Shown here one piece after another: positions 24,339-56,118 of a DNA stretch of 64,000 nucleotides. A program made the translations under genes and the position numbers. Origin of the DNA: Mantamonas sphyraenae STR306 (Eukaryota; Protista; CRuMs); NCBI GenBank assembly GCA_026936335.1, contig JAPMXV010000011.1, positions 62,001-126,000 of the forward strand. The letters run 5' to 3'. Under the pieces are notes generated by a model. It had not been told where the DNA came from, made no database searches, and was given only the letters and a program-made list of their open reading frames with translations. Within the stretch, counting starts at the first letter, position 1. Each line of letters starts with the position of its first letter.

Positions 24339-26145
24339 TCATCGAAAGAGGGCATCCTCGTTGCGAAGGTGGAACAGGGGCCGCAGTGCAACGCCGAGGT
24401 ATTGTCCCGGAAGATTGCTGAGGATCCACACGTAACTGTGAATGCTGGTGCTGGACATGCCAGAGAAGAAGGCGCCAATGTTGCAGCCAAAGGCAATGCG
24501 TGAGCCGTAGCCCATCAGTAGGCCGCCGAGAGTGGCACCGAAAAACACGCGGAAGCCATTGACGCCACGATGGTTGCCACATTGGTAATACTCGCTTTTG
24601 TCCTGCACAAACGTGCCCGTGGCCATGGCGGCAATGACGGCGCCGAGAAAGACGCCGAAATTGACGATGGAGGCGGAGTTGCGCAGGGGCGACTCGAACA
24701 ACACCCCGGCAAGCTCCTCCTGGTGCCAGTAGGGCCACTCGTCAGGCGTGGCACCCATGGCCATGGCCACCTTGGAGCCCCACTGGGAATAGGCAGTGGT
24801 CACACCCCACGGATGGCCAGCCACCAGGAGAAGGAGGGCATTGAGAACAGCGAGGGCGATTGCCCCGCTCAATTTAGGCCAGGGACCAAACACAAGCCGT
24901 TGCATGCGCGAGCGACGGTACCCAATGATGTCTGAATCGTCGTGGCTGGGAGGGTTGGGTTCAAACATGCGCAGGCGATCACGGAGCTGGGCGGGCATGG
25001 AGACGAACCCCAGACCCAGGAGGCGGTCGCCGTGGTACCAATTCTCGTAGGAGACAGAGACAAAGACAAGGAGGGCCAAGAGGGCAACCTGGAAGAGGAG
25101 GGCAGGCAGGTAACCCCATGCCCATGAGAGGGTGTACCCTTCGCTGTTGGGCAAACTCATCCACCAGCCCCAATCGGAGGCACTCCATGTGGTGCCCACA
25201 ATGAACCACAGCAGTGCGTTCATGGAACGCAGACGCCCACGCGCCGCACCCACAAGGATCCCCGATCCACAGCCGTCGGCAATCTGCTGGCCAATGCCAA
25301 ACATAAAGGCTCCCAGCACCACGGACACGCCCGGACGACCCAGTTTGGGACGGGGACCCACCAGCGTGGGATCAGCATCGGGCAACGCCGACGGGCTCAG
25401 GCCCAGCACAAGCGAAAACAGAAGGGTGCTCGTCAGAAGCATTACCAATTGCAGGCGCACCCCACCCGTGCTGTAATGAGGAGAGTGGGGCAAGTGTTGG
25501 GTCCGTGCGTGTGTGAGAGAGACAAGGGGAGAGGGAGAGAGGGTGTGTGGGTGTGGGTGGGGGGTCCATGGTATCGTGTCAGCGAGGGCGGTGGGAGCCA
25601 GAAGCGGGGGAAGGGAGGGAGATTCAAAGGGACGGCGCCCAGCACGGCCTTTTTGCAGCTCCCCAAGACAGCACACATGTCACACATGCACACACACACA
25701 CACACATACCGGACGTCTGTAAAGATGCGACGGAAGAAAGAGGAGAAGCCAAAGCCCGAGTAGACGAGAGTGGCACCGATGCAAATGGCAATGACAAAGG
25801 TGAGACCCTTGAGGAAGCCGTCGATGATGAGGAGAAAGACAAGGAGGAGGATGGACAGGGCAGCGGGAAACACCATCATGTCACGCTGGGGACGAGGAGG
25901 CACGTCGAGTGCATTGTGATAGTAATCCTCATCGCCGTCTTGGGAGGTGATGGTGCCGTCATAGCGCGTTTTCACGCCTGCTGGTAGCCCCGCTTGATGC
26001 TTTCCGACACAGGCAGGTCCAGCAGCGGGATGTTGTCCAACAAGGTGCTCACCACCCCTGGCTCACCGTCACCAGCACCCAACACGTCGTCGTCGTCGTC
26101 GTCCTCAGACGCCAGTGGTGCGGCCATGCGATGTCTGGACGACAT
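24339..26145 (-). CDS. YeeE/YedE (TsuA-like) sulfur-compound/thiosulfate transporter; intron 25709-25471; apparent frameshift ~25976
   Basis: Paired motifs GAFMFGIGQQIADGCGSG and GGLLMGYGSRIAFGCNIGAFFSG, plus PWGVTTAYSQWG and multiple TM segments. Confidence 0.88.
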
Positions 26146-33626: not shown

Positions 33627-36600
33627 TCACTGCGCTTCGCCTGGGAGCTCACCGTCGAGGAGCCAGTGATTGGTGAGCTGCAGACGCCAAGCGGCATCCT
33701 GGGCAGCCTTGGCCTTGGAAAAGAGGAGAATCTCGAGGGAAGAAAAGGCCAGAGTGAGAGACAATAGGGTCCACATGCCAGCTGTGAGGGTCTGTCCATC
33801 GATGATGAGCGGGGCAGCGTCGACCACCCACGTGGCGACGATGCACACAGAGAGCACATTGTGCCTGCGTGCACCCAGCCACGAGTCCAGCAGCCACGAG
33901 TTGCGACTGACGAGAAACGTGAGAGAAAAGAGGAGCACGAGTACGGCGCGAGCGAGCGTAGTCAACACCACGCGGCGCATCTGCGACGGAATGTGCGCCA
34001 CCAGGTCACCGATGCTGAAGGAGCTCTCCAACGCGGTGGTGAGCACGGTGAGACAGCCATAGGCGGCGTCGAGCAGAGCGACACACACAATGGCCAGCGG
34101 AAAGGGCAGTGTGCGCAGGTAGGCTCCGCCGGCGAGGGGATCTTCGCGCAGGCCGTCGATGATGACCACTGCCTCGAGCAGCACAAACACAAGGTGGTGC
34201 AGAAAGACCATGGTGAGCACGGGTGTGTTTGGCAACTGCAGGGAGAACACGGCGGCCAGCATGAGGGCCACCGAGAGGCAGAGGACAACGACGGAGTAGA
34301 CGTGCTTGCCAGCCGACGACGAGGGCCGCAACAGGGTGCGACTGGGCATGACTGAGAAGCGTGTGACCAGTGCCATGCGTGCCGTGGCCACCACCATCGA
34401 CACCAGCGCCAACAGGGCGTCCATGTATCGTCCGGGCTCCAGCACGTACTCGCTGAGGGTGTGGTGCGAGAACGCAGGGGCAAAGATGAGCACCAGCACC
34501 GCCACGTGGCCATCCATGGCCAGGAGCACAGCCACACGCGGGGTCCAACGACGCACGGTGCATGCGCTGAGCATGGCGTTGACAAACAGCACCCACAGCG
34601 ACAGGCAGAGGAGTACGAAAAAGTATTGCACCAACAGGTACGCACGGTGCACGAGGGCAAACAGAAGCACCACGGCCACGTTGAGCAGAAACATGGTCAG
34701 ATTGGTGGCGCGGTGCGACACGCGTCCGTCGTCCCACGAGGAAACGAGGGCACGCGGAAGGAAGAGCAGCGCCAGCAGGCCACCCAGGAAGAGATTGGCC
34801 ACCCCGGTCCAGTTGTGCGGCATGCCACGTTGGAAACAAAACGCCACCGGGGGCAGCAGCACAGCCAGTAGGGTCAAGATGGCCAGCACGCGGATGAGGG
34901 CGTTTGCGGCGGGCCAGGCAGCGACAAGGACAAAGAGGACCAGAATGGCGTAGAGGAGGGAGAGAGCGCCATCCAACGCACGCTGGGTCGACGCACGCAC
35001 CACACTGCCCACCGCACGCGACCAGGCCCACACCCAAGGGGCAGGCAGGCAGCCGCGCAACGAGGGCATCCAAAAGTACAGCGACAGCGCCGACACGGCA
35101 GCCAGAATCACCACGCGCCCTCCCAGGTCCAGTTCGATGGCATCGAAACCCGACTCCGGTGCAATCAGCGCCAGGTAGAAAATCGACGACACAAACAGCC
35201 CAGGCACGATGCTGGACAGGAGAAACGTGACAAAGTACGCCGCAAAGGTGGCCGGGTTGAAGCTGCCACTGTTGCGTGGGTTGATGTGGAACACAGAGTC
35301 CTTCTGCACAAACCACCGCTTGGCACCCAGTTCCGCCACCGTCGTCACCGTCCCTCCGTCTGCATCGCCATCGCCCACCACCTTGCCCGATCCCGCCCCG
35401 ACAACAACTGCCGACCCCGATGATCCCGAGCCGGACGACGACGATCCCGTCGCCAGCGTGTTTGACCCACCCTTGCGCAGCCTTGTGCGTCGATTGTGGT
35501 AATCCATGGATCCGTACCCGCCGCCTCCGCCTCCGCCCTCCTCCGCAATGGACTCCATCAGTCGCGGGTCCCCTCCTCCGGCGCCACCCGCTCCTCCTCC
35601 AATGCCCACGTCGCCCCCTCCATCGACACCCACATCCATGGCGGAGCCGCCTGCAGCTACAACCAAGTCTCCACCACCAGGGCCGTCTGCAACCCCGCCT
35701 CCAATCATGCCCAAAGCCACGTCGTGGCCCACCACGGCCGCAGTCGGCACACTCACTGTGTCACTGGCCGTGGCTCTGCAACCGGCCATGAGCAACGCCC
35801 TGCCCAACTGCTCGTGGGCACTCAATTCGCTACGCACCGACGACAATGACGCCTCGTAGCGATGATGATGATGATGATGATGATGGTGGTGACTTTGGTG
35901 CTGGTGCCCGTGCAGAGGAGACCGCTCGTGCACGCCACCATCGTCGTCGTGCCCATATATGGGTGCGTAGGAGCGACGGTGGCGACGAGTGCGTCGCTGC
36001 TGCGGCGACAGAGGCGCGTTGCTGACGCTGCTGACGTTGTTGTACAGCGGCGCATGCGAACGCACGGCACGCACGAGTGGGGCCGTCACGCAGAGGCACA
36101 CGTCGCTGAGGGTGCCACAGAACCCTCCGGCCAGGGCAATGCGTGTGTCGAGGTAGTGGGCGTACTTGCGGCGGAAGAAATCGACAGCCGCCTGGAGGTG
36201 CAGTCTGTCCACGTGCACATACGACTCGGTGTGCAGTGCCACCAGGTCGGTGTTGCCCTGGTCCAACCGAATGCGATACTCGTGCACCAGGTCGTCCAGC
36301 ATGGCCATGTCGAGGTGGCACACGTCTGCCTTGCTCACCAGCAATAGATTCGGTTGTGCTCGCCACTGTGTGCTCCCGGCGTGCGGCTGCGACGGCAGGT
36401 GCTGCACAAATTGCACCATCGACCCTTCTGGGTCCGGCACCACATGGACAGTCAGCGTCGCCACGCACTCGGTGCTCGTGCCATCCATGGAATCTGCAGT
36501 CGGACCAGCTCCTCCTCCTCCTCCTCCTCCCGCACCACCGGCACCACCACCACTCCCCACCCCATCCCAGGCTCCGTCGCTTTCGTACATGCCACCCACG

Positions 36601-37372
36601 TGCACAAACATCTCGTCCTGCTCCGCACCCATGTCTGGATACCGGGTGCGCTGTACGTAGAGCACCTGAAAGGAGCCCACGGGAGGGACCTGCAGTGTGC
36701 GTGGGTCAGGCCACACCAGCGCAGAACTGAGGCGACCCAGTTCCTCAAAAAGGGCGCGTGCTCCCGTAGGCGTGGCCATGATGACCATGTCCAGCACATA
36801 CGACACGGGAGTGTCCATGGTGCGCACAAAATGCACCAGAGCACGTGGGTCACCGTACAACGAGGCCACCATGGTCACCGTGAGATCAAACAGGCCGCGG
36901 CGCACCTGTTGCCGCAGGATCTGCGACAGCTGTTGGATCTTCTGCATGTCGTTTGGCAGCGGAAACTCGGCACTCACCATAGCATCACACACCGCCTGCG
37001 GAGGCAGTTGATCCGTGCTCAGCCACTGCAGCATCATACGGTTGCAGATCCTCCGCAGCGCATCCGTGAAATGGTGGATGCGATCGCCTTCGCCCAGGAT
37101 CTCCCGAGGCGGCGGCGCATCGGGGAAGTGCATGTTGACCAGTGCAATCTCTGCCAGGTAGTATGGATGCTCCAGCAAAGCAAACGAGTTGCACGACGCA
37201 CGGTACAGAAAGTCCTGCGATCGGTGCGGGTTCAGTGTGCGTTGCATCTGCTTTTCCGTCAGATACAACTGCCTGCTCATTGACAGCGGTGCCACTGGAA
37301 ACGCAGTCTTGGGCACATCCACGTGCATCGCACGCCGTCCTCCACGTCGTCCTCCCGAACGCCTGCCACCGG

Positions 37373-37406
<34 letters not shown>

Positions 37407-37599
37407 ACTTGTGGCACTTGTGGTGTGTGGTGACCCCATGGCCCCCAGGCTGCTGCCTGTCTCATCCCCACCGTACAACCGCCGCGACACGCTGTCCATT
37501 GTCGAGCTCGATTTCGATCGCACAATTCGTCGCGGTGACGACGTGGCGGACGATCTCACGCCACCATCATCCAGACTGTCAATGTCGGTGCTTGGCGAC

Positions 37600-37634
<35 letters not shown>

Positions 37635-40633
37635 AGAGGATGTTGCGGCTCCGTTCGCAGACGACCTCCGTCCCACACGTCGAGCTCAACCATGCGCTGG
37701 CGTGCGGCAATGGCCGACTTGAGCATGTGCGTAAACACGTGGTCTTTCGGTGGCTGGTCGCCTGCACTCGCAAACCGGGAGGCAGACGGAGGCAACGGCG
37801 GATAGCCGCTTCCGCCGCCGCCTACAGATGCACCCAGGGAAGAAGGCGGGGGAGGCGACGGCCCCGTTTGCGTGCGATAGGATGCTGGCGATGCGCCTAG
37901 ATCCATTTCGTTGAGCGAGCCTGCGTCGGTGTGTCCATGCGAGCGTTGCGCAAAAACAAACGGCACGGCATCCACAGACGACGCCGTCGATTCAAACACG
38001 TGCTCGCTGGTGTCACTCATGCGATCGTCCACCGCCCCATCGATGTTGATCTCGATGTCTGCTCCCGCTTGTAGATGCGGCTGCAGCTGCCCACGGTCGC
38101 GTTCGTCGCTGCTTCGTGTGCTATCTCCATCCCCGCCGCCGCCACCGCTGCTGCTACTGCTGGACATCGTCGCAGCCAGCATTTGTTGGGCAGCCAGCCG
38201 ACCCAAGATGGAGTCGTCTGCGGAATAGTTGCTGTTGAGACCCAGTACGTAGCGTGTGTTTGGGTCCAGGACGTAGAATTGGTTGATGGCACGCAGGATG
38301 ATGTCCACGTCGCATACTTTGCTGCTGTACAGGTGTGCACTCAGGTGGTAGACCACCATGGCGCACATATAAGTGGCCACCGAAGTGCCCGAGTATCCGC
38401 GTGGGTCGTGCTGCGCGCGGCTGCGTTTGGGAGTGCGCTGGCCGTGCTTGTGGTGGTGACTGCCCTTTTTGCTGCTAGTGGTCAGTTTATTGACCTTGAT
38501 GTTCACAGCGGGCAGAAACAGGTCCACCGGCTCGCCAAAGTTGGACCCGCTGTGGATGTCACTGCTCGCTCGCCACCGTACAAACCCATACAACCCGCCA
38601 CCGCCGGTACCACTGCTGCTGCTGTTGGACTCCTCCACACTGCTGGATATCCTCGTGACGCTCTGCTTGCCAGTCGTGCTGGTTTCACCGTCGACTTCGC
38701 TGGACTTTGCATCCAGCGGCTGGCTACAGCCGACGGTCAGCACATTTGGGCAGCACGCAGGGTAGGCATACTGCCGCGGAATCGAAATGTCGCGGTTGTG
38801 GTTGCCAGCTGCACAGATGGGCAGCACGCCGGCGCCCACCACGGCGTCGATGCCGTCCTGCACGAGCTGCAGCTGTTCCGGCACCAGATTTTCGATGCTC
38901 CACGCACACAGCATCAGCTTGCGTGCGTGTCTCTCTTCTTCCAGCTTGGCGATCCGCGTCACTGCGTCCAACGCGTCCACAATTGTCGCCACGCTGTCCG
39001 TCACCACAATGGGAATGATCTTGGCGTACGGCATCATGTCCTGCAGCAGGTGGTATGCGTACGGGTGGCCCTCCACGCTGCCGTATTCCTGTTCGATGAT
39101 GTCCTGATGTCTGCCAAACACCTTGACCTTGGGGCCAAGGCTCTCGAAGCTGGCGGGAGGTTCGAGCAGAAACACTGTAAACTCACCGTCGAGCTTGTCG
39201 TGCAGACGCGACTGGAACAGGAACGGCTGCATGTGTGGGTTGCTTTCCAGGAACGCGCTGCCCTTGGGCGTGCACGTCACAAAGTCCACCAGCTCGTCGG
39301 CTGTGTCCAGGAAGCTCACCGACGCCTCCGAGCCTGCTTCGCCGCTGTCGTACACACCGACCACCTCGTCAAAGTCGTCGTCAAAGTCATCCAGCACACA
39401 GTCAAGAAAGTCGCGTTCGCTCAGCGTCAGTGATGCCGAGTCGTCGTCCGTCGTGGTGCTCGAGCTTGCGTCGTCGTCCAGCGCCGCCTGTGCGCGCGCA
39501 TACGCCGCGTACTCGTTATAAATAGTGTTGTTGTCGCCGCTGCCACTCCTGCTATGGCCACTCATCTTGCCCTCGCCTGCGTTGCCGCCACTGCTGCTGC
39601 TCCCCTTGCCGCTGCTGCTGCTCACGGACGTCTCGAACACAAAGTCCGACTTGTGTGTCTCGTTTTGGCTCTCGCCGCCTGCTTTTTGTCCCTGCAGGCC
39701 CGCGCCCACGTTGCCCAGCTGCATCGTTTGCAGCATGCTGTACATCTGGCTCACGTCTTCCATCGATGCCTGGAAACCGTGCGTCTGGAACTTGCGGGAT
39801 TGCTCTGTGGACAGCGCAAACGAGTGTCAGCAAATGGGTCCCGTTTTTTTTTTCCGAGAGATGGAAAGCCCTCTCGCTTGGCCCTTTCCACGGCCGGTGT
39901 TCTTTCGCCACCGCACGGGGCACACACACGTGCGGATGCATGCATATGCACATGTGTGCATGTGCACGGCATGCGCGCTTCACATACGCCTGTGCATGTG
40001 CTCGCTTGGTCACGCACACGTGTGCGGCGCGCAGCGGAAGCGAGCGGACGAAAATGGAACGGTGGAGAGCAACGTCGCGCGACTTTCGGCAGGCTTACCT
40101 TGCGGATAGGCAGTCACGAGCACAGAAATATACAGAGAGCAGTTCAGCTGCGGGTAGCACTGTCGAAAAGTGGCCTTGATAAAGGTGTGGCACGAACACT
40201 GCGTGTGCATGAGACTGTAGACCAGGAACGGAACGGCCCGAAGGATCTGTCCGCTGCCGCCGACCTCTACGCCTCCAGCCTGCATGCTCTGCGGCTGTTC
40301 GATGTACCTCAGCGACGCACCCTGGATGGCCTTGAACACCAACGGGTGGTCAGCAATGAACGTAAACGGATCACTGATGTCCGGGAACATGTGCTTGTCT
40401 GTGTCTTCCTGCACCGTCGCCTCCACCAGCACGGGTGTCGACTCGGCCGAAATGGCCAGCAGGCTGTCGTACTTGCCCTGCGTGTCCTCATCCAGCATCT
40501 GCACCACATCCGACGTGCTCACACTTCGGATGGCTGCGTACACCTCCTCCACAATCTGCTGCTCCGTCACCGCCTTTTGCACCTCGTGGACATTTGTCAA
40601 CGCCTCTTGCAAGGCATTCGTATCCACAAACAT
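33627..40633 (-). CDS. Putative ~2,240-aa protein: N-terminal domain + divergent S8 subtilase + unknown/GTPase-like domain + polytopic membrane domain (intron 40098-39805; joined across apparent frameshift ~37677)
   Basis: The intron splices in frame (YPQ|EQSRKF...MEDV). S8 motifs VFLLEP, EGHPYA, CAAGN, YPACCPNVLTVG, SNFGEPVDLFLP, SGTSVA. More than 10 hydrophobic segments at ~33650-35250. It could instead be two genes split near 37.6 kb. Confidence 0.7.
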
Positions 40634-40901
40634 GTGCGCAGGGTGGGTTCTAGCTATGGTTTTGCTGTTCAGCAGAGAGAAGAAAAAGAAGGGGTTCGGT
40701 TGAATTGGTTGCCTGCTCGCCCGCGATGCTCCTCCTCTCATTCCTGTGTACATTCTGTTCCTCCGAGACCTCGCCCACACGTGTGGGAATCCGATGCAAA
40801 GAGCCTGTGAGGTCGTACGACGCTTTGTAAACCTGCGGGGTGTTGCCTTGCGCGCCTGCGGCCACAACAACACCCGCCGCCCACGAACCATGCACAGATC
40901 C

Positions 40902-42281
40902 ATGGCAGGGAGAGTGAGCGGCACCCAGCCGCCACCCATCCTGCAGAGAAGCACCTGTGGGGCGCGGGAGGCCATAGCAGAGGCAATGGGCGCGTGCGAG
41001 TCGGGCGAAGCCCTGTCCACGCGGCAGGTGCATCGCGACGACGTGGATTTCGACACGCCGCTGCCCTTTGCCTCCACAGCCACCACCGCGTTCTTCCAGC
41101 ACAACCCGCACTTGCTCGACACTCTCCTGGAATGCGAGCAGCACGCGGCACTGAAAAACCGTCTGCTGGTCTTTCTGCTGGAGCCGGCAAACTCGTTCCG
41201 CTCGCTCAGCGCAGCCCTCAAGCAGCGTGTACAGCCAAAAGGCGCTCTTGACTCCGATCGCTACCAAATCAGCGACGAAGGCCACCCGTTTGCCTTTTCC
41301 CTCCTTCGTGACATGATGCCCTACGCCGTCATCGTACCCATTGCAGTGTCCAACCGCATGGGCACCATTCTGGACGCCCTGGACGCAGTCACCAAGTTCA
41401 GCACACGGCCCAAGTACGCTCACTGCCACAAAATCATGCTTTGCTCATGGGTCATCCGCACCTCAAACAGCAAGCTTGTCTCTGCCCTCACCGACAGTTT
41501 CAACCGCGTCGTCGATGCGGGCGTCCTCGCCTTTTGTGCCGCTGGCAACGATCATTTGTTGCTCGCCGATTCTCAAGTGTCTGCCCTTTCCCTCGCCGTC
41601 GACCAGCCATTCCATCCACGCCGACGCGACGACTCGGTGCGCTCCCTCTCCTCCGCATCGACATTTCCCTCCATGAACACAGATGCCACAGGCTCCAGCG
41701 ACGGCGCAGGCGGCTTTGGCAAAGAAGAGGCGGAAGAGCAGGTCGCCACCATTGGCGTGTACCCGGCCTGCCTGCCCGAAGCCATCACCATCGGCTGCTG
41801 TGACACCGGAGGCCGCTCTCTATGGGTGCCTCTGCCTGGCCAGCTTGGTTCCAACCATGGGCCCTGTGTCGATCTGTATCTACCGGCCATCAACATCAAC
41901 ACCGCTTCGGGCGCCAAGTCCGGCACCAGCATGGCCACCTTTCTCGCTGCCGTCATGATGTATCACATCCTCGCTGCTCAGCCCGACCATGTGTTTACCT
42001 CCAAACACCTTGTTATCCGCCACCTACGCGCCTACTACCACTTTGGCGCCACACGCTTCCTCCTCGGCGCACGCACACGCGGTAAGTCCACCTGCCATGC
42101 TGGTTTTGCACAGCACACACCCAGAAACTGTGTTTACATCGCCTCTCGCTCACACACACACACACACACAGACATCCAATACGTTGCCGCAGACGCAAGC
42201 CCGTTTTCCTCTGCCTCGTCGTCGACTTCCACGTCCTCGCGGAGCACAGGATCCTCCTCCTCATCATCCTCCTCCTCCTCC

Positions 42282-42316
<35 letters not shown>

Positions 42317-45300
42317 GCTTGCCCTGAGTGGGACACAGCCACAGGAGACGACACGACGCCGTGTGCAGCAGCTGCGCGGTGGCAGGAGACAATTGCCAGC
42401 CACCCTTACGCCGCAGCTGAACCTGGATGGCCTGATGGGCAGCACGCAGGCTCGTTTTGTGGAGGATTTGATTTGGAGGGGCGAACTGCTGTACGTATTG
42501 ACCCTCCTGGAGCAGATGGACTTTCCTTCCGGCGCAACATACCTGAGCACAGGCACGCAGGAAGACGAGACGGGCGATGAGAAGGCCCAGGATTACGTGG
42601 GTGGAGACGTGCACGACGACACACTGGACATGAACGACCTGTGCCTGATGCCACTGAACGAACACGGGTGGCAGTTTGTGCACCTGGCTGCCTTTCTGGG
42701 CGACACAGACGCCATGCGATGGCTGGTGGACAACTACGGATGCAGTTTGGGTGCAGTGACGACGTGGGGGGCACTGACGGCCCTGCACATTGCCGCGTGG
42801 CATGGCCACTTTGCGCTTCTGCAGGTGATGCACACCATGTCCGCTGGCGCATGGGCAGGCTGGCAGTTTGACGTGGATGCACGAAGCAGCAACCAGTACA
42901 CGCCACTGTTGCTGTCGCTCATGTCCGGCCACGACAAGCCGTCCGTGTATCTGGTGCGTGTCATGCGTGCCGATCCCAGCGTCGTGGATCACCTGCGCCG
43001 CAGTACCCTGGACCTGGCCCTTATGCAACGCCTGGAAATGTGTGCCACGTTGCTGCTGACCAGAGGCATCCCCGTGCAGCCTGCACAGGTACCCACGGCC
43101 GTGGCTCTGCTGCAGGCCATCCACAACGCAAACAAGCACCGCCACGCTCAGCAGGACCCCATCGAGTGCCTGCGACTCTTTCGCGTTGGCGAACTGCTGA
43201 ACACACCCAACGGCAGTGCATCGGAGGAAGAAGCCCTGGCCGTCCTCGAGCAGCTCGCCTATTTGCCTTCCACCATTGTCGAGCTTGACCTCAACCATGC
43301 CTTTAGCAACGCCTCACCGGCCGTCCAGCCGGTTCTGCCCGTCGTGGCGCACGCCATGGAGAAGCGAGCGGCCATAATGGCCATTGTACAGCGAGAAGAG
43401 CAGGCAAAGAAGCAGATGGAGGGTAATGTGGCGCAGGAGGAGCAGGGCGACGACGACGACGACGACGACTTTGACACGCTCTCCCGCTGCGGAGACTACC
43501 GCCTGGCACTGGCCCACAACCAAATTTCCATGCTAGATGCATCGGTGGGCACACTGCAGGCACACGGAGACAACTGGTTGCACCTGACCGAGCTGGATCT
43601 GAGCAACAATCGGCTGAGCCACCTGGACCTGAGTGGCCTGTGCAACCTGAGCGTGTTGAACCTGTCACGCAATGCGCTGGAACAGGTGGATCTGCAGCCG
43701 CAGTGGCCTTTGGTGTCGCTGGACCTGTCATACAACCAGCTGCACGTGGTGCCGATTGCTCTGCGCACCCACAGCTTTGCCCAGCTTGCTCAGCTGTCGT
43801 TGCGCTTCAACCACCTGTTGGAGGTGGGACTGGGCGACGTGGCCATGCCTGCGTTGCGCGAGTTGGATCTGAGCAACAACGAAATCGACTCGGTGCGGTT
43901 CAGCAAGTCGTTTCAGCAGCTGGCCGTGCTCACCCTTTCACACAACAAGCTGACCTCCATCCCCACCTCCGTGCTCGATCTGTACCACCTGCACACTCTG
44001 GACATCAGCAACAATTACATCACCGACCTGCCCGTGGGCATCCTACGCCTCTCGCGCATGGTGGGTCTCCGCGTACAACCCATGCACGCTGTCTGGCAAA
44101 CGCCTCCCCAGCGCCTGCTCGCGGAACACGCAAACGATCCGTACAAGCAGACCCGCGTGGCCATGAGCTACATGCAGGCCTTGGGCCACACGGTCATGCA
44201 ACGTTCCCGCGTCACCTTTCTCACCGACAACCGACGCATGGGTCAAACCAAGGGTTTGGTGCACTCCTTGCAGGGCGCCGCCTCCACACAGCCTTCGTCC
44301 AACATGAGTGTCCACCTCCTCAAGCGCATGCGCAACATGTTCAACTTTAACCAAACGTCCACCCATCAGGCGGGCGGCGACAGCCAGCGCGTGTCCCAGC
44401 GCACACCATCGCAGACCCAATCTCATCGCAGGCTCACAACGCTTGACGACACCGCCGACGCCGGCCTCGTCGCCAACGACGCCGACGCGACGAACCATGA
44501 GTACGGCGACGGTGGCGACGGCGAAAACAACGACGGCAGCAGCGACGAGCAGAGTGACGGGGACGGCAGAAGACGGCAGCGTGACACCGAGGACGAAAGC
44601 AATGGCGCAGTGACACGTGAGGACAATGAGAGCAACGTTGGTGGGCATGTGGAGGACCAGGACGACGAGGACGACGAGCTGCAGAATGGATCGTTGGCAA
44701 CCACGCTGCTGCTGGCATCGACATCGACCAATCCGCAGGCGGCGCTGAGGCATTTTGGACCGTTCCATGTGCAGGTGCAACGGTATCTGACCAGTGGAAA
44801 CGGCGTGCTGAATCTGTGGCAGTGGAGTGGCCACGAGGCGGCGCAGCCTAGTCTGCCCTTTCTGGTGCAGCAGAGCAACGGCGTCATTGTGCTTGTGTCC
44901 CAACTGGCACAAGACGACGAAGACATGCACCGCTTCTGGGATCGGTACCGCTATTGGCTGCATCGCATTTGGATCAGCGTGCAGGAGGCCAACGACCTGA
45001 TGCTGGAGGATGCCGAACGCAGCCATGTGGGCGCCGTCTTCCACGAGGAGGACATGTTTGGGTCCACCACAGAGTTGGCCGAGTACGACAGCGAAGCATT
45101 CCGTACAAACACCACCGCGTTTTCCTCCATCGGCTCCCTGGACTCGTTGGGCTCGCACGCACGGTCACGTGGCGACATGTCCTTCTGGAAGAAGGTTACG
45201 TCGCGTGCCAAGGCCAACCTGGGACGCGGGGGAGGCAACAATGATGGCGGTAGCAGCAGCAGCAGCAGCAGCCATCACCAGCAACATGCCTCTTCTCACA

Positions 45301-47372
45301 ACGCGCTCCTGGACGCCTTGCAGGCGGCCCAGGAGGAGCTTGACCTCGTGCGCAGCACGACCAACGAGAACAACGCCAACACGTACGGACGCAGGGGACA
45401 ATTGGGAGGACAGCAGCATCAGTTGCAGGGAAAGCGAGGGGGAAAGGATGTTCTGATGGTGGGGGGAGGACGTGCGACGGGCACAGGCACGGGAACTGGG
45501 GGTGAGGACGAGGGCGAGCAACAGCGCCAGGAGCATCTGGCCAACATTGTGCGAGACACGCGTCCCACAATTCTGCTTGTGGCCACACACCGGGGTTCGG
45601 TGAACTACGAACCGGACATGAGCCAGGAGCGCGTGATGGAGTTGATTGACGAGGTGCCGGGGCTCAAGGTGATTGCAGACCCCGTGGTGCTTGTGGACGG
45701 TGATCTGAGCAAGATCCAAAATGCCATCAGCCGGGCCATGATGAGTGTGAACGGGACGCCGCAAGACGAGCCGGAGTTTACGTCGTATGTGTTCAATTGT
45801 GTGCAGCTTGTGCTGCGCCGTGTGGTTGCACAGGGACGCACTCCCATCGTGGGCTGGGACGAGTTTGTGCACCTCATCGACGAGGAGGGCAAGCCACCCG
45901 TAACCGAATCCCAGCTCTACGCCATCATGCGCACCTTGCACGAAAGTGGCGACATCACATTGCACCGCGCAGATCTGCTGCGTGAAGCCATGGTCGATGC
46001 AGGTGCACAGGGCAGCAGTCCGCTGCTCTCGTCACGCAACGTCGTTGTCGTCCTCGAGCCCCAATGGCTGGCCCAGCTCGTGAGCAACACCCACCACGTC
46101 GTCTCGTCCGTCGACACCCAAATGAGCGGTCTCGTCACACACCAGAGCCTGGGCAACTTTCGCTTCCGCTACAAGTATTCCTTCCGCGAGGACCACCGCC
46201 GTTCGGCGTCGTCACAATCTCCGTCCCAATCGCATTCCTCTGCCTCTGCTGCCTCTGCTGCTTCTGCTGCTTCGTCCATGGCGGGCGTGGCTGGCGACTC
46301 TGCCATCGCACAGTCTGGTGGTGCAGAGAGCAGCAGCCAGGGTGGTAGTGTCAGCGAGAACGACGAGGCCGGGGAAGGGGTGTCATCTTCCTCCTCGTCG
46401 TCTTCGTCTGCTTCGTCTGTGGCAGGGACAACCACGGAGCAAGGAAAAGGGTTTCTGGTTCCAGCAGAGGCCGGTGGCAACGAGACCCTGTTGAAGATCA
46501 AGCGAGAGGATGGCATGGTGCACATCACAGTGGATCACTGGTTGCGCTCCATGGACGTCCTTCAGGTGCTCTACATGGTTGGCATGTCCTTCCCGGTGCC
46601 TGTGGGCGTCAGCGAGCGTGGCATTGCCCTGCACTCGTACTTCCCCTGCGTGGCACACACAGGCGACCCGCGATGGCAGGTGGAAAAGGACGAAATTGCC
46701 ATTGGGCGTCGCATGCGCTGTTCGACACACCCCAAACGCTTCCCGCCCGGGTTCTACCACCGCATGCAGCTGTGTGTCCTGCGCAATGGCTGGCAACTGC
46801 CCACGGTCAGGCACATGTCGCGGCATGGCATGCATGTGCAGTGGACCAGCGCAGGCGACGATCAGGACAACGAGGATGCCTCGCAGCAGGCAGAGCAGGA
46901 TGATGGCGACACGGAAGCCTCGGCCCCCGTTCGTTTCGACTGCCTCCTGCAGTACTGGCCCCAATTGGACGCCGTGGACATGACCATCAAGGCAGCTGTG
47001 GGTACGATGAAGCTACAGGAGCTGTGTGACTCCATGTGGCTCCTGCTGCACTCGTTCTGCTTCTCCGCCGGCGTCGGCCTCTCCACACACGAACTCGTGG
47101 CCACAGAGGTGCATGACCGCACCTACGCAGGCTTTGTGCCGGCCAAGAGTCGCTCTGTCAACACAACGGCGTCGTCGGGGACGTCGGCAGGCACAGGGAG
47201 TGTCTCAACTGGATCGACCGCCACAGGCCCGTCCACAGCACGCACTTTGCCTTCCCAAAACCTCTCCCAACGCTCTGCAGACACCCGATTGGCCCTGGAT
47301 CGTGGCAAGGGTTACCGCCAAACCTTGGATGTGGACCGCGTGCCGATCGCAGAGACGCAAAACACGCTGTGA
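40902..47372 (+). CDS. S8 subtilase-ankyrin-LRR-degenerate Roc-COR (Roco-like) protein; intron 42082-42171; start uncertain (40794/40902/40986)
   Basis: S8: VFLLEP, EGHPFA, CAAGND, YPACLPEAITIG, SNHGPCVDLYLP, SGTSMA. ANK: LTALHIAAWHGH, YTPLLLSL. Several LxxLDLSxN LRRs. Roc-like LNLWQWSGHE, YWLHRI, ILLVATH. COR-like VVLEPQWL, FPPGFYHR. Confidence 0.85.
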
Positions 47373-48207: not shown

Positions 48208-49854
48208 ATGTCCAACAGCTCCAAAGTGGTTCGTGCCTGTACGTTTCTTGCCGCGCACAACACCAGGGATCTTGCAACTCGCATGCACACACGTTGCAGC
48301 CACTCACACACACACACACTCTCTCTCTCCCCACGCGCTTTGCTCTGCACAGTTGCCAAGGCCACGAAGAAGCTGGAGGACCACAATGAGATCGACTTTG
48401 TGTCCTCGGGTTTCGACAAAAAGTACCGCAAGGCCCTGGAGGCGGTGAAACAGTACGTGGAGAGACTGTGCATGAGTCGTGACTACATCACACGCTGTGA
48501 TGCGCGGTCTCGCGTTGCGTATTGGACATAGGATGGGAGTGCGCAGAAGCGGAGTGACCTGGGTAAGCAATCTCTGACGCGCCAACCCGGTCGGGCACAC
48601 CGCACCCCGCCCTGGCACCACACACAGGTACGCCGATTACCCATGGGGCGACGAAACGTGCACCCCAATTCACTTGGTCCAGATTGCCGAGATGTTTCCG
48701 GTGTACGTGAGCTCGCAGGTGGCCAATGGACACTCGCAGGACGAAAACTGGAAGCTGTGGCTGGATTCGTGCCTGGCCCTGCTGCAGGCCATCCGCATGC
48801 AGCCACACATCGATGCCGAAGACCGAGCAGCCCTGCACGACTCCACATGGGTGGCCATCATGCAACTGTTCACCACAGCCGAGGAGTTCTCCCATGTGAT
48901 GCGCCTGTGCGAGATGACACGCACTTACTTTGTGGAGGAGTTCAAACGAGGTCAGATTTCCGCGTTCCACACCCCACACACACACACACACACACACATG
49001 TCCCTTCACACGCAAGCACACGCACACAACAACGACACACACACGCACACACACTGTGTTGAACGTGTTACACCCCCCACCCCCTTGCCTCCCACAAGCA
49101 CATGACGCTTGTTGGGAAGGTGCAAAAGGTGGCGGGAGGGCTCAATGCCAAAGTTCCCCGACCGCCCACCCGTCCGACACACAGTCACTGACACGCAGAC
49201 ACAGACGAGTCATCGTACAACCTATTCTTATTGCCCATGATTACGGCGGTGGTGCACCAGTACGCAAGCATCAACATTCGCAAGAAGGAGCTGGAGGCAA
49301 ACCAGGGAACGACGAAGCAGTTCCAGGAGCAACGGCGTCGAGGCCTGTCCCTCAACCGCAGCGCCTCGGACATGGACCAACTGCTCAAGCCATTGCTGGA
49401 GGCACACGACACAGCCGCCGCCGTCCGGCAGCTCATCACAGACATGCTCGACCTCGAGGAGAACGCACAGATGAAGATGCTTGAACTGCTGCGTTGTTCG
49501 GCCTCAGACACTCTCATTCCACTCAGCGAACTGTTCTTTGAATACTTTCCCATCAGTGAGACCATCACTGCGGAGCAAACCGCACCGGAGACTCGCGACG
49601 ATGCAGGGGACAAGGAAAAGGCAGGCGAACAGAACGACGACGCCACGGGCGAAGACAACGACGACCACGGCGACGACGACCACACAGACGCCCACGAGGA
49701 AGAAGATTCAGAGTCCGAAACCGCTCACGGTGAGCATGGCGAGCAAACGAGTGAAGACGAAATCGTGGAGGTGGTGGACGACGATGAGAACAGCGACCAC
49801 TCAACCACTACCACCACCACCCTCCTGCAAGTGCCAAGTACACCCACCAGCAAA

Positions 49855-49885
<31 letters not shown>

Positions 49886-52800
49886 CAAGCACACCTACAG
49901 ACGTGGAAGTCTCCCAAATCGCAGAGGCTGCGTTGTCACCCATGCCGCCGTCTTCTTCCTCCTCCTCCTCCGCGTCCAGGATAGACAGCGGTGAAGGTGT
50001 CGGAGGCAGCGGTTCGTCGCCTGGTACATCGCCACGTGCTCATATGGGACCTCACATCGACGAGCAAGAGACTGAAATGGGGTTGGCACGTGTGCCTGGC
50101 GGCACAAAGAACTACGTGCTGACGCGCACTGAGAGCGTACGTCGTGCATCCATGGTGGCAGGCCGCGGCGACTACCAAAACAGATCCAATGTGCGCTTTT
50201 CCATGATCCTCAGCTCGCCCATGGACCACACAGAGACCCACCTGCAGCTGGATCCGTATGGCGACGAACCGCAGTCGGAGATCTTCCTCGACGCCGTGGC
50301 AAACATTGTCATGCAGCCCGACTTTCGCATTGCCATGGTCGGTCTCAAGCTCATGCGATCCACCTGCAAGCCCGTGGCAGGTGTGCCCGAGGACCGCGTG
50401 CGCGTCATTGCTGGCGCAGTGGGCGTGTGGATGGACCACTTCCTCAGCCGCACAGGCGAGGGCGACTATGAAATGGACGTCATCGAGGCATTCACAGAGT
50501 ATGTGGTGCCCTGGCTCGAGCAGTGTGATAAGGTGTACCGCGACGTGCTGTGTCAGATGTGCATCCCGTCGCCGCCGGCCTCCATGCGAAGAGGTCCCAT
50601 CTGGATGGTGCAACGCACACGCACGGCCGCCTCCGTCGAAGCCACCACTCGTCGATTGCGCTACCTTGTCATGCGCTTCATCAAGATCGGCTCCATGCAC
50701 AGTTTCAAGCACTGTGTCGAGCTCGTGTACCCGTTCTGGCTCGACCACCTTGCGCCGCGCACCTTTGGAACCGTGATGAAGCCGCAGGACAGGCCCGAAC
50801 CTGCCCTTCTGCGCCTGGGCAACACCAAGTTTCGCATCGACACGGACATTGCCGCCATGCTGCGCAACGTCCTCGAGTTTAAGGAGGCCTACACGCTCAC
50901 CCAGCTGCTGGAGCAGGAGGAGAGTGCAGGCGACGCAGGTTCCTCCTCTTCCTCTTCCTCCTCATCCTCGGAGCGCGGGGATGGCCAATCCAGCGAAGGC
51001 CAGGACAGTGAAGGGGGACCCAAGTCGTCCTTCAACGACGTGGTGCGCTTCAACGGCCGCACCGTGCCCATTAGCCTCATCCTCAAGGCGCGCTTCCAGG
51101 ACTTTGAGTTTCTGCTGTCGCAGTTTGAGCGTGCTGTGACGGGCAGCAATGGGGACAGCGGACGCACAAGCCGCAACGCCGTAAACGAAGATGGCTGGGC
51201 CGAGGATGCAAGCTCGGGCGACGACATGCTGACCACCCTGGACGACTCTGCGTTGGGCAGCGACAAGGACGCCTCGTTTGAGGAGCAACGCGAGTTTATC
51301 ATGAAGAACAAGTCGATCCAGCGTGGCACGCGCTGGATGGAGCTTCTGATTGCCATTGGCGCCCGTGTGCCTCTGGAGGTCATTTTCGCGTGTCTGGGCA
51401 CCGACATGTCTGTCAAGCAGGCCTACCAATTGCTGGAGATGGTCTTTCGTCTGCTGGCACGCGACCCATTTATTGGGGGTTCGCTGAATTATTCGCACGA
51501 GGAGCTGCTGCCCCTGCTGACCCTCCTCGTGACCAAGTTTCCACGGCGCTCTAGCCCAGACTACTCGCGCTTCATCATTCTGCTGCTCAAGCTCATCGAG
51601 TATGCGTTTGGGGCGCCGATTGCCATTGAAAAGAGCAACATGTTGCGCGACGACAAGACGGCCACCGCGGGGCGCTCGGAGGTGGAGGCTCGGTTTGCCA
51701 AAAGCACTCTGGGTGCGTCGGCACAGCAGCAGCAACAGGGAGAGGTTGTGATCAAGCGCAACGTAACGGAGGACAGAGAACCCTTCATCGAGGTGACGAT
51801 GGACGACATGTTCCTCCTGCTTGTGCTGGAGCATGTGAACGACGAGGACGAGTTTGTGGTGTGCAGCGCAGTGCATTGCCTGCACGCGCTGAGCAATGTG
51901 GGCGTGGTGCACCGCTCCATGGTGACCAACGCACACGAGTTTCTTATGCAACACCACGAAACCATTGCGTACCGGCTGTGGACGGTGTCGCAGCCGGAGT
52001 ACTCGGTGGTGCAGAAGCAACTCATCGACCTGTTCCACTTTTTCATGCGTCAATCGCACGCAATTGTACAGAAGCCTATCGACAGATCGTTTGAGAGCGA
52101 AGACTGGTTGGAGCGGTATGCAGCCATCAACCGCGCTGTTGGCCTGCTCAATTGGCCCATGGTACAGAAAGAAGACATTGAAGACTGCACCGAAGAGGTG
52201 ATTGGGTCCGCCTCTGCGCAGATGCTGCGTTCGCTCAGCGATCCCAATTCGCACGTGCGCACACGCGCGGAAATGACCATCAAGAGTCTGGACAGGGTTG
52301 TGCTCGACCGCATGGTGTATGCCCTGAGTGCATACTACATTGGCACGTCGGTGCGTGTGCGCACGGCTGTGGTGAAGGAGGTGCACGTGCTCAAGACTCT
52401 GGTGCCCCACTACGACTTTCCCCTGGACACTCGCTTTTCCCTCTCGCAACTCACCACAAGCATGGGCATGAAGTCGGATGCCAAGCCAAAGCCGCGTGTG
52501 CAGGAGGTCAACCGCTACCGCGACCTCAGCGCACGCGTGGCCAACACGCTGCCGAAAGAATTGGTCAATGCCTCGGGTCTCGCGGATGTGGCCAACGGAG
52601 CCAACGGCGACGGTGCTGGCGGTGACAACTCGGGCAGCAGCAGCAACAACAGCGGTGGAGCTGGTGGTGGAGCTGGTGGGGCACGTATAGGTGCGCGAGC
52701 AAGTGCAAGCGACGGGGCAAGCAGTTTGGCACGGCAGGCTGTGCGCCAGAGCTCCATGGACAGCGAACTCATGCGCAGTGCATTGGATGCCGAGGACGAG

Positions 52801-55800
52801 GAGGGCGAGGAGGACAACAATGAGAATGACGAAGAGGAGGAGGAGGAGGAGGAGAACGCCCAAGGACGAGCCATGTCGGTGACAGACACGGTGCTCAAAG
52901 CGGCAGCCATGGCGGCGGGCCAGCAAGCGGACAAGGACAAAGACAAGGTTGCGACGGCGCAGGTGGGCCGCACAGACTCGGTGACTCGCAGCGGCAGCAC
53001 GGCGAGCGTGAGGCAACAAAGCACGCACCGAGAACGAGGAGCGTCAGGAACAAGAGCAGGTGCGGCGACGCAAGAGCAGGACGAAGTGGCAGAGTATGCG
53101 TCGCAGCTGCGTGCTCGCACAGAGCTGATCAACAACCGAGTGCGTGCGTGGAAAGCCAAGTCGAAAAAGAAGCGGCAGGAGCGTCTGCGTGCAGGCAAGG
53201 CCAACGAAGACGACCATGCGCTGTACAATCTCAAGGCCATGCTGATGACGCTGGCATTTGAAAACATTGCGCGTGCGGCGTTGTACAAACCGTTGGATCC
53301 CGAGGATCCGGCCAACGACCAGTTCCGGCGCACGACAGCCAGCATTTTTCTGCAGGTGAAGGAGATGCGAGAGGGCAGTGAGGCGTTGGATGAGCTGATG
53401 CGTGGCCATTTGCTCATGTTTTCGTACCTGCAGGGCTGCACGAATGTGCTCATCCACAACCGGTCCATCTCTGACGAGCGGCTGGTGACGTACTTTCTGC
53501 GCGACATGGACGAGGTGTTCAAGCGCGTGGACTTCAACACTATGCACCCGATCATTTGCGAGTCATGGCTGCAGATGTTGCAGGCCATGCTGTCGCACTA
53601 CGAACTGGTGGCCACCGAGGACAACCTGACCAAGGTGGCCGCACGCGAGGAGCCCACGCGGCGAGTGGTCCAGCATGTGTTGCGCTGTGTGGACGGCAAG
53701 AATGTGACGGACGAGTGCAAAGTGCTGGCCATCAATTGCTGCTGGCTGACGGTGCACCGCTGGCGTCCGCTTGCTGTCGCTTCGCTCTTTGACATGCTGC
53801 GCATCATGTGCAACACGTACGTCAACTACGAAACACCCGAGGTGGCTGGCGCCGCGTATGTGTGCCTGCAGGAGATCTTTCGCGTGTATGCCAACGCAGG
53901 CGTGTTTATCCACGTGTTCAAGCTGGACATCGACAGCGAAGACTTTACGGTGACGGAAAACGAGTTTTTCGGCATCATTGAGAATCTGGTGAACGATCCG
54001 ACGTGTGGCCTGCAGATGTACGACCCCATCGAAGACGTACTGGAGTCGATTTCATTCTTCAACCTGAGCAACTCGCAGTTTACGCACGTGATGTACAACC
54101 TGGCCAAGTACGTGCGCACTGTGGTGCTGAAGGAGCAGCTGCCCGACCATCTCATCTTTGCCTTTCGTCGCTTCCTGCGCAGCATCACGCACGAGTATCC
54201 GGACGCAGACTACTCGGTGGTGCTCAACATCATCAGCGTGCTGCTGGAAAACTCGTTGGAAAAGTTCACCGAGCTGGTGGAGCCCGTGCAAACCCTGCTG
54301 GAGTTTGGCATCCAATCGACAGAGTGTGACCTGTCCGGTGACGCCGTTCACAAGTTCATGGCCACTGTGGCGTGGTTCTTCCGCTACTCGCGACACAAGT
54401 TTTCGCGGCCTGTGGCAGAGCTGCTGCGCGATTTTCTCAAACACCTGACGTACGCGATGCCGCGCAACCACATGAAGCGCATCCGCATCTCGGAGCAGCT
54501 GCAGTCGTACGTACGCATGTGCATGTACGACCTTGCCAACCTGCAGATGCAGGTGCAGAACGATGAACTGAACGCACTCGTGCAGCGCAACGAGGGCGGC
54601 CCACGCAAGTTGAACAACCGCAGCATCAGTCAGGCAGCGCTGGGACGCTCCGCCATCAAAGGAGCCAAGGCAAAGCGAGATGGTGACAGCAGCAGCAGCA
54701 GCAGCAGTGGCGGAAAGGGAAAGGGCAAAGGCAAAGGCAAGGAAAGCAAGGACGGCGCAGTGAAGTCGGCGGCACCCTCGCTGTCCTCAGTGGGCGGAGG
54801 TGGCCTGGGATCAGATGGGTTTGGGGCAGCGGGACAGTATTCGAGCTCGGCGCTGGCGGCGCGACGCAAGAAGGAAAAGGAGGAGGGCAAACGCAAGGGC
54901 AAGGGAGGAGGAGGAGGCGACGGCGGCGGCAGTGGTGGCAGTGGCGGTGGCCTGTTGGCCAATGGACGTAGCTCGAGTGGACCTACATCGATGGACAGCA
55001 CGACCGCCAATGTGTTTTCGCAAGCGAGGATGACCAAGCTACATGTGGAAAGGCAGAAGAAAGCACCGATGATCATGAAGCTGTCGGAGGAGTATCTGGG
55101 GAGGTCCTACGTGACGAAGCACATGGGGTACTATGTGCAGGAGATGATCACGTATCTGGGCCACGTTCCGGACAAGCCCGAGTTTCGACACGCCAAGGCC
55201 GATGTGGCACACTACCTGTGTATGCAGTCGATGTACATCCACAAGCAACGCAGCAACATGTGGGAGATGGCCCTGCAGGAGCCAGGGTCCCTCGTGCGGG
55301 GCGACGATACACACAAGCTCCTGGACCAGTTCCGCACCTGCGAGTGGCTACTGCTCGACCTGTGCACACACACGGGCGTGCTGCTCAAGCATGAGCGCGA
55401 ACACTGGGACAGCAAGATTAGCCGCTATGTGCAAAAGTCGCTGGAGACGCTGGTGCCTGTGCGAGGCCTGGGTCGCGAGTTTGAGTTTACCCTGACACAT
55501 GCACAGACGCTGATGCACACGTTTCTGTGCGTGCAAATCTACACCTACTTTCTGGTGCGCAACGAGAAGGACGAAAACGTGCATCTGGCGTTCTGGAACC
55601 CGCTGTGGAGTCTGCTGGTCAAGCATCTGATCCCGTCGTCAGGCATCCAGGCCGAAGACGACGAAACCGGCGGCGCAGGCAGCTCCTCGTCGTCGTCGTC
55701 CGCCGCATCGAACAGCAACAAGCGTCGTTCGATGACTGGGATCAAGGGTGACGAGATCCTGGTGTTGTCGGAGATCCACTCGCCCGGGATGGGCCTTCTG

Positions 55801-56118
55801 TGGGCTCTGTTTGTCAACACAGTGATGGTGTTCCAAACCATTTCGCCCTCGCTGTTGGCCATCTACGGGCCGTATTGGATGACAGCGGTGGCCATCATCG
55901 AGGAGAGACTTCCGAATCTCGGTGCCAAAGAGATCCGTCCCCTGCGCAGGCTGATTGCCTCTGTGTACCGGGGACACACCAGTGTGGGCAAGGAGTCGTC
56001 GCCAGAGGACGTGCAGGAGCTGTTCAGGCAGCAGCTGTTCTATCTGGTAAGCGAGAGCAGCCTGACGACGCTGTTTACTCAGTTTGCGTCGTCGGACGAG
56101 CTCAAGGAACTGTTGTGA
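48208..56118 (+). CDS. Very large HEAT/ARM-type protein, UNC79-like (NALCN channelosome subunit family); 5' exon structure partly uncertain
   Basis: RAFAKATKKLEDHN, TMDDMFLLL...AVHCLHALS, SEDWLERYAAI, SLSDPNSHVRTRA resemble UNC79 segments as I recall them (FASKIRYLQEYHN, SMEEMFGF, SKDWKMRFEAV, EDVNPAVATRA). Confidence 0.6.

Follow-up and report, generated by a model that had tools for sequence, protein, structure and literature searches.

A head-to-head gene pair of Mantamonas sphyraenae with paralogous Glu-His-Ser subtilase domains fused to a degenerate Roco scaffold and to an orphan membrane domain

INTRODUCTION

Proteases fused to receptor-like scaffolds or to membrane domains are already known. 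In brown algae and other members of the stramenopile-alveolate-Rhizaria (SAR) group, group 3 Rocos without a kinase carry ankyrin (ANK) or leucine-rich repeats (LRRs), then Roc-COR and a C-terminal peptidase domain, IPR009003 (PMC11378527). In fungi, a cytosolic S8 (subtilase) domain is the N-terminal effector of tripartite NOD-like receptors (NLRs) and is genome-linked to its substrate; these HET-Q2-like and S8/NACHT/WD40 proteins have neither a signal peptide nor a recognisable I9 prodomain (PMC8851545). The Dictyostelium TagA/B/C proteins join a serine protease to a polytopic membrane domain (PMC3743828). The paralogous subtilase-fold domains CspC and CspA of Clostridioides difficile form a heterodimer that acts as a signalling node (PMC12880746), and the paired plant NLRs RRS1/RPS4 and RGA4/RGA5 lie head-to-head across a short shared spacer and share an N-terminal domain type (PMC9528088). 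Finally, a class of subtilases with a Glu-His-Ser triad in the subtilisin fold, the definition of which PMC3937732 credits to Siezen et al. 2007, is known from prokaryotes, and its member SprP of Pseudomonas is an active, Ser-dependent protease (PMC3937732). Here we describe a pair of divergent genes, A and B, at positions 33627 to 47372 of a 64,000-nt stretch of Mantamonas sphyraenae STR306 (GCA_026936335.1, contig JAPMXV010000011.1, positions 62,001 to 126,000 of the forward strand), which we call the window and to which all coordinates refer unless another contig is named.

Protein A, like the algal Rocos, has ANK and LRR modules ahead of Roc-COR, no kinase and a fused protease; it differs from them in that the protease is an N-terminal S8 domain rather than a C-terminal trypsin-like domain and in that the G1 and G3 motifs are lost. 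As in the fungal receptors, an S8 domain without a signal peptide or recognisable prodomain is fused to an NTPase-fold and repeat module and adjoins a membrane-acting gene, but here the module is Roc-COR rather than NACHT, the partner is polytopic with an S8 domain of its own rather than a gasdermin, and the triad has Glu instead of Asp. SprP shares the Glu-His-Ser triad, but it is secreted and bacterial, and no sequence link to the Mantamonas domains was found. By analogy with CspC:CspA the two S8 domains might form a single signalling node; the Csp proteins, however, are soluble, catalytically dead spore proteins, whereas the Mantamonas domains retain their triads and are joined to large eukaryotic modules, and dimerisation here is hypothetical. 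Unlike the paired plant genes, neither A nor B is an NLR or has an integrated decoy domain. The Tag protease acts at the cell surface together with an ABC transporter, whereas protein B has no ABC cassette and its S8 domain is predicted to be cytosolic. The literature searched, which held few subscription papers, contained no S8-Roco fusion and nothing under Glu-His-Ser subtilase, and the combined architecture of A and B was found neither there nor in the databases, in agreement with an earlier note on this stretch that knew of no described system of the same make-up.

Mantamonas is a deep-branching, free-living, bacterivorous marine flagellate of the CRuMs, which branch next to Amorphea. The FALCON assembly of M. 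sphyraenae, a diploid, comprises 25.06 Mb in 78 contigs with 59.19% GC, and its genes are mostly single-exon (PMC10492846). The assembly searched in the current study holds 25,061,354 bases in 78 contigs at a GC content near 59%, with the locus on contig 11.

RESULTS

Both proteins carry a Glu-His-Ser subtilase domain

Gene A on the plus strand encodes a protein of about 2,160 residues and gene B on the minus strand one of about 2,237 residues. The two divergent genes of roughly 2,200 codons described in the earlier note are therefore real, and their catalytic Ser codons lie where it had placed them. An S8 domain is present at 41088..42060 in gene A (plus strand; Pfam S8 E 5e-6 with the excised domain) and at 38240..39265 in gene B (minus strand; E 2e-8). 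Against PF00082, for which the cut-off is 21.8, the B domain scores 34.1 bits and the A domain 26.5 bits. In a BLASTP comparison they are 31% identical over 413 columns (E 4e-45), rising to 41% over a core of 188 residues, and they have motifs in common, which bears out the proposal that they are paralogs. An AlphaFold2 model of the B domain, built on four alignment rows of which one is a canonical subtilase, has the subtilisin fold and is confident in its N-terminal half only. All best matches of this model are subtilisin-fold structures (Foldseek E 1e-4; VIA Z 13.2, root-mean-square deviation 4.1, 208 aligned residues), as the S8 assignment of the earlier note had led one to expect.

The catalytic residues in both domains are Glu-His-Ser with an oxyanion Asn, so the Asp-His-Ser triad that characterizes family S8 is absent. 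They are encoded at 41181-41183 (Glu), 41283-41285 (His), 41547-41549 (Asn) and 41928-41930 (Ser) in gene A, and at 39163-39161, 39067-39065, 38803-38801 and 38383-38381, respectively, in gene B. The Glu closes strand 1 and precedes the His by 32 residues in B or 34 residues in A. Asp32 and His64 of subtilisin have the same spacing. Identity as a sedolisin (S53) was excluded, as the His and Asn are kept and the Glu-Asp-Ser triad with an Asp oxyanion residue is not what is found. The Glu does not imply a dead enzyme, because SprP, a member of the Glu-His-Ser class, is active. Neither protein has a signal peptide, as the earlier note had stated, and neither has a hydrophobic N-terminus; therefore both S8 domains are predicted to face the cytosol. 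With the catalytic residues kept in each, both may be capable of Ser-dependent proteolysis.

Origin and copy number of the S8 pair

A genome search recovered two S8 domains of this type in 25 Mb, and they are adjacent. The other S8 domains of the genome belong to four canonical subtilases and several longer sedolisin-like proteins. Given only two such domains in a genome of 9,416 genes, their adjacency is not due to chance and reflects a local inverted duplication. The earlier note had proposed a search for recurring S8 pairs in protist genomes. Each copy has the other as its sole relative of this type within the genome, and the only clear relative found outside it is a fragment from M. plastica.

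This fragment of 159 residues (EukProt; E 1e-55) was the only strong outside match among the 1.84 billion representatives covered by the protein homolog search, in which the exons and reading frames of gene B were used as separate queries rather than as a joined model. It is 62% identical to the S8 domain of B and 38% to that of A, compared with 38-41% between the two paralogs. Glu, His and Asn are invariant in A, B and the fragment, and Ser in the two full sequences, A and B. M. sphyraenae is sister to the other two Mantamonas species. Because of this branching order and because the fragment is nearer to B than to A, the inverted duplication, by sequence comparison, predates the separation of M. 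sphyraenae from M. plastica and is thus no younger than the genus in its current sampling. Word-indexed homolog searches, which are length-limited and could miss fragments, returned nothing beyond the M. plastica sequence. The next-best S8 match beyond Mantamonas was a canonical Asp-His-Ser subtilase (E 9e-4), and no Glu-His-Ser relative such as SprP was recovered among the 1.84 billion representatives or in prokaryote genomes, plasmids and phages. Consequently, the Glu of the Mantamonas domains is probably convergent with that of the prokaryotic class.

Conservation of the catalytic residues also bears on whether these domains are still enzymes. They could be pseudoprotease scaffolds that have given up cleavage, or retain a single cut as PCSK9 does, and that now act in binding or heterodimerisation, in line with the dead Roc domain of protein A. 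CspC:CspA is a precedent for such a role (PMC12880746). We consider this quite improbable, since the two paralogs have diverged to about 40% identity and yet both retain the full set of four catalytic residues, with Glu, His and Asn found in M. plastica as well, and since the Glu-His-Ser class includes an active protease (PMC3937732).

In run X5, an aquatic metatranscriptome from 2025, four contigs of 151 nt are identical to the S8 part of gene A. In this independent sample they are a trace of M. sphyraenae or of a strain very close to it, and they are too few to name a habitat.

Protein A is a Roco with a degenerate Roc domain

Downstream of its S8 domain, protein A contains about three to four ankyrin repeats (42660..43080, plus strand; Pfam Ank_2 E 1e-8, with matches to DARPins), a helical region, and LRRs with seven canonical motifs and a cap (43497..44060, plus strand; Pfam LRR_4 E 4e-16). 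These are followed by a degenerate Roc domain (44199..45780, plus strand), which is divided by low-complexity inserts into three pieces at 44199-44279, 44763-44996 and 45546-about 45780, and by a COR domain that also has inserts (45790..47135, plus strand). Protein A has no membrane helix. Pfam Roc did not match it, the locus is missing from the 128 genome matches of PF08477, and Pfam COR-A gave E 0.005, which is below the cut-off. A profile of five Rocos (three bacterial and two from Mantamonas), however, aligned colinearly over 222 columns from G3 through COR-A and scored better than all of 1000 shuffled sequences, a match that is weak in absolute terms and was obtained after the low-complexity inserts were trimmed by eye. 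The arrangement is that of a Roco, with Roc directly followed by COR and both located after the LRRs. The ANK-LRR-Roc-COR architecture given in the earlier note thus stands; what did not hold is an intact Roc.

In Rocos nucleotide binding is the role of the conserved motifs G1 to G3, and dimers form through COR (PMC6337361). The Roc domain of protein A has neither a GxxxxGK[ST] motif (G1) nor a DxxG motif (G3), while a Roco-type G4 is kept. Because G1 and G3 are lost, protein A is probably a pseudo-GTPase Roco with a Roc domain unable to act as a nucleotide switch. A genome search with its Roc-COR part found no close paralog, and its LRRs are encoded without introns.

Several other Rocos were observed in the genome. 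Contig 56 encodes an LRR-Roc-COR-CLU protein with an intact P-loop (L049, 3334-9999), where CLU denotes clustered mitochondria / eIF3 p135, and a canonical Roco is located on contig 61. On contig 68, at about 203000-221000, three adjacent long frames (1805, 2009 and 1798 residues) match Roc and/or CHAT, with both in the single frame of 2009 residues; these are tandem Roco-caspase-like fusions. In a frame of 339 residues on contig 20 (L050, 5828-6844), overlapping stretches match COR-A (E 2e-10) and the mitochondrial calcium uniporter (E 1e-45), possibly a Pfam cross-match.

Gene B is a single gene interrupted by an assembly error

Contigs from the public sequencing runs X1, X2 and X3 were aligned to positions 37000-42900, a range that ends ahead of the LRRs of gene A. 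We infer that X3 is the RNA run of the genome study: the paper lists one such run, and the X3 contigs leave out a 294-base segment that is bounded by GT..AG on the minus strand. Gene B extends from 40633 to 33627 on the minus strand. Its first exon (40099..40633, minus strand) begins with the ATG at 40633 and contains 178 codons, which encode a helical N-terminal region of no known family and without a signal peptide; the X3 contig on this side stops at 40661. The 294-nt intron (39805..40098, minus strand), skipped in X3, has GT..AG ends, and 40098-39805 is the sole GT..AG choice that leaves the frame open. The second exon (33627..39804, minus strand) encodes the S8 domain, the linkers, the middle domain and the membrane domain, and terminates with a stop at 33627.

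In the assembly, gene B is split over three reading frames, and a one-base deletion on the minus strand at 37660..37670 (about 37665) breaks it into two apparent open reading frames. At 37664-37666 the contigs of all three runs contain a base that the assembly lacks. It is present at full contig depth and in two allelic forms, which suggests a heterozygous site near 37665 that the consensus left out. Without the extra base the S8 frame and the membrane frame are offset by 2, whereas with it the offset is 0, and codon bias changes frame at the same point. From the extra base, the frame arithmetic and the codon-bias switch we conclude that gene B is one gene of about 2,237 codons. The earlier note was therefore right to join the S8 and membrane domains in one gene, but not in a simple frame, as the gene has an intron and the assembly a one-base deletion. 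The extra base is about 15 nt from a skipped repeat, and no contig bridges the site by 31 nt on both sides.

Were gene B instead a broken pseudogene or two genes, there would be no S8-membrane fusion. For this one can cite the frame break in the assembly, together with the lack of a listed contig that bridges the break or spans the repeat at 37363-37649. Against it, the extra base is found at full contig depth in all three runs, the downstream frame leaves no space for a promoter or start of its own, the frame favoured by codon bias changes exactly at the break, and gene B undergoes splicing, is transcribed and has a conserved counterpart in M. plastica. We regard decay or artefact as hardly credible.

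In X3, gene B has a contig depth of about 500 in its 5′ part, which drops to 207 over the S8 region and 68 downstream, compared with 41-51 for gene A. A shorter, S8-only transcript is conceivable, although contig depth is a poor measure.

Gene A and the shared spacer

Gene A (40890..47372, plus strand) is a single open frame that encodes the whole S8-ANK-LRR-degenerate Roc-COR protein, with the ATG at 40890 or 40902 as its most likely start. The start at 40794 that had been proposed earlier was rejected: run X1, which represents one haplotype, has an extra base at 40870; the two haplotypes differ by five substitutions and several indels between 40672 and 40858; and the RNA-like X3 contig on this side begins at 40875. 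The other elements of that proposal, the gene B start at 40633 and a short spacer, were correct. The divergent spacer (40634..40889) measures about 256 nt from ATG to ATG and about 213 nt between the ends of the transcript contigs, exists in two haplotypes, has no notable repeat and is presumed to be a bidirectional promoter. Both genes are transcribed, as both are present in X3 from an ordinary culture. Within the covered region, 8 of 10 coding variants are synonymous and the other two conservative (binomial P 0.0004-0.002), which indicates purifying selection on A and B.

Protein B ends in a membrane domain without relatives

Protein B consists of an orphan N-terminal region, the S8 domain, a long low-complexity linker, a middle ordered domain (36056..37337, minus strand), another linker and a membrane domain (33720..35252, minus strand). 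The middle domain has a helical part followed by an alpha/beta part. The membrane domain has about 14 hydrophobic helices, in keeping with the polytopic partner that had been predicted, and no internal repeat. Neither of these two domains belongs to a known family, as no match was found in Pfam, NCBIfam, PADLOC, PHROGs, the PDB, a large protein collection or the ESM Atlas. The membrane domain is a single copy, with no second place in its own genome, and gave no usable ESM Atlas match; for the middle domain the ESM Atlas returned only a START-like lead below threshold (0.83). Outside the S8 domain, A and B have no homology to each other.

Two readings of the middle domain found no support. As a small GTPase or Roc domain it scored -2.3, a value reached by 357 of 500 shuffled sequences, and the Roco profile did not match; a G4-like motif is visible by eye, but both profile tests were at chance level. 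A CHAT-like reading received no support from domain scans. Nor did domain scans detect NB-ARC or NACHT in either protein. A single-sequence AlphaFold model of the middle and membrane part reached a predicted local distance difference test (pLDDT) score of 37.5, too poor for fold comparison. No match to gasdermins or other pore-formers was found for B in Pfam, NCBIfam, PADLOC or the PDB, and the fold model is too poor for a structural test of this.

Other genes in the window

On the minus strand, the frame of a 734-residue protein (33583-31385) with a weak C-terminal match to the TFIIB/cyclin fold begins about 40-140 bases from the gene B stop. On the other side, 49237-56118 (plus strand) encodes a HEAT-like protein of 2,295 residues with a weak Pfam match to UNC-79 (E 0.0014, below the cut-off), possibly a NALCN-complex-like subunit outside animals. 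A YeeE/YedE-type sulphur transporter, of a usually prokaryotic family, is encoded at 24339-26115 (minus strand; Pfam Sulf_transp E 1e-42). PIG-N, at 58233-60729 (minus strand), is in two frames around 59545-59690, due to an intron or another one-base assembly error. The overlapping frames 1-2112 and 1929-3491 (1-3491, plus strand) encode a repetitive coiled-coil protein, 55-76% alike, and probably belong to a single gene that contains an intron or a frame break.

DISCUSSION

We tentatively and only narrowly favour, as a reading still open to doubt, that A and B form a two-part proteolytic switch at the cytosolic face of a membrane. Protein B would anchor one S8 domain at that face, and protein A would be a soluble scaffold with an ANK/LRR arm that binds a protein cue and a nucleotide-dead Roc-COR that serves only dimerisation or autoinhibition. 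Protein A would dock on B, and the two S8 domains would plausibly make the contact, in the manner of CspC:CspA. Docking would release proteolysis, in cis or in trans, within the long disordered linkers of B or A, and cleavage of a linker would change the state of the membrane domain. Possible outputs include trafficking, phagosome or stress signalling, and defence, among which the sequence does not discriminate. In favour of this switch, the paired S8 type is confined to two adjacent genes, a binding scaffold and a membrane anchor complement each other in architecture, and protease-Roco fusions recur in the genome, as with Roc and CHAT on contig 68. The age of the duplication, together with the confinement and the complementarity, speaks against mere inertia.

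Several observations weigh on the other side. In both S8 domains the catalytic Ser is not followed by the conserved Pro, and bulky residues occupy the positions of subtilisin Gly127-Gly128, so these domains may have narrow activity or none. No relatives of the locus were found in scans of metagenome, prokaryote or virus contigs, and no orthologue of A in M. plastica, for which the transcriptome is partial. The 5′ part of B has several times the contig depth of A, although such depth ranks genes unreliably. The 64-kb window has about seven divergent junctions among some 27 genes by codon-bias scan, several with spacers of 100-700 bases, and a head-to-head pair of Rho-like and Ras-like genes, 38% identical, is present on contig 49 (188600-193400). 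The contig 49 pair itself seems to be present twice in tandem. Since inverted duplication explains both adjacency and orientation without a functional link, the layout is weak evidence and does not prove the sensor/effector pair that the earlier note inferred.

These observations lend themselves to another explanation, which we hold to be a real possibility and almost as likely as the switch: A and B are independent paralogs, produced by inverted duplication and domain shuffling, kept adjacent only by a shared bidirectional promoter in a compact genome, and each with an S8 domain that acts on the protein carrying it or on substrates of its own. Such an origin fully accounts for the layout; short-spacer divergent junctions are common in the window and old head-to-head paralogs exist elsewhere; the proteins have no homology beyond S8; and contig depth is uneven between them. 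Yet linkage has apparently outlasted divergence to about 40% identity, the S8 type occurs nowhere else in the genome, and a soluble binding scaffold beside a membrane anchor is a complementary combination.

An immune sensor and executor pair, with A recognising a pathogen molecule and then cutting B so that a cytotoxic membrane pore opens, seems improbable to us. The idea draws on the S8-NTPase-repeat logic of fungal S8/NACHT/WD40 NLRs and on the finding that about 80% of fungal gasdermin genes adjoin protease genes (PMC8851545), on the head-to-head layout that defines paired plant NLRs (PMC9528088), and on the CHAT proteases of other Mantamonas Rocos. However, the locus is single-copy with no expanded family, its variants in the covered part (the LRRs lie outside it) are mostly synonymous, B has about 14 constitutive membrane helices and matches no gasdermin or defence family, the genes are expressed in ordinary culture, and the switch domain, Roc, is degenerate. 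Two analogies that the earlier note had used also fail. The het-Q1 and het-Q2 genes are alternative alleles (idiomorphs) at one locus, not a head-to-head pair (PMC8851545), and B resembles no gasdermin. Brown-algal immune Rocos are expanded and diversifying (PMC11378527), whereas this locus is single-copy and conserved, with intronless LRRs and no sign of repeat shuffling, LRR polymorphism being outside the covered region. It is unlikely, in our estimate, that the pair is a new type of eukaryotic two-gene system for signalling or defence. Such a system would couple a new polytopic family to a pseudo-GTPase Roco receptor by heterodimerisation of their Glu-His-Ser subtilases, and cleavage triggered by ligand binding would gate the membrane domain.

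Some of what the locus offers stands even if A and B never meet. The literature searched contains no Roco that joins an N-terminal subtilase to a dead G domain. The same independence applies to Glu-His-Ser subtilases in a eukaryote, a class described from prokaryotes (PMC3937732), and to a membrane domain of roughly 14 helices without a relative in the billions of sequences searched. Gene B is also an example of a one-base assembly error that masks a real fusion gene. The reach of these findings is limited to one genus, from which alone the locus is known. Within it, Mantamonas couples Roco scaffolds to proteases repeatedly, here and in its Roc-CHAT proteins, as fungal and animal NLRs are coupled. 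If the coupling of A and B is true, a protease-gated membrane switch would join the receptor-protease-effector systems, and the two genes would provide a compact system in which to test it.

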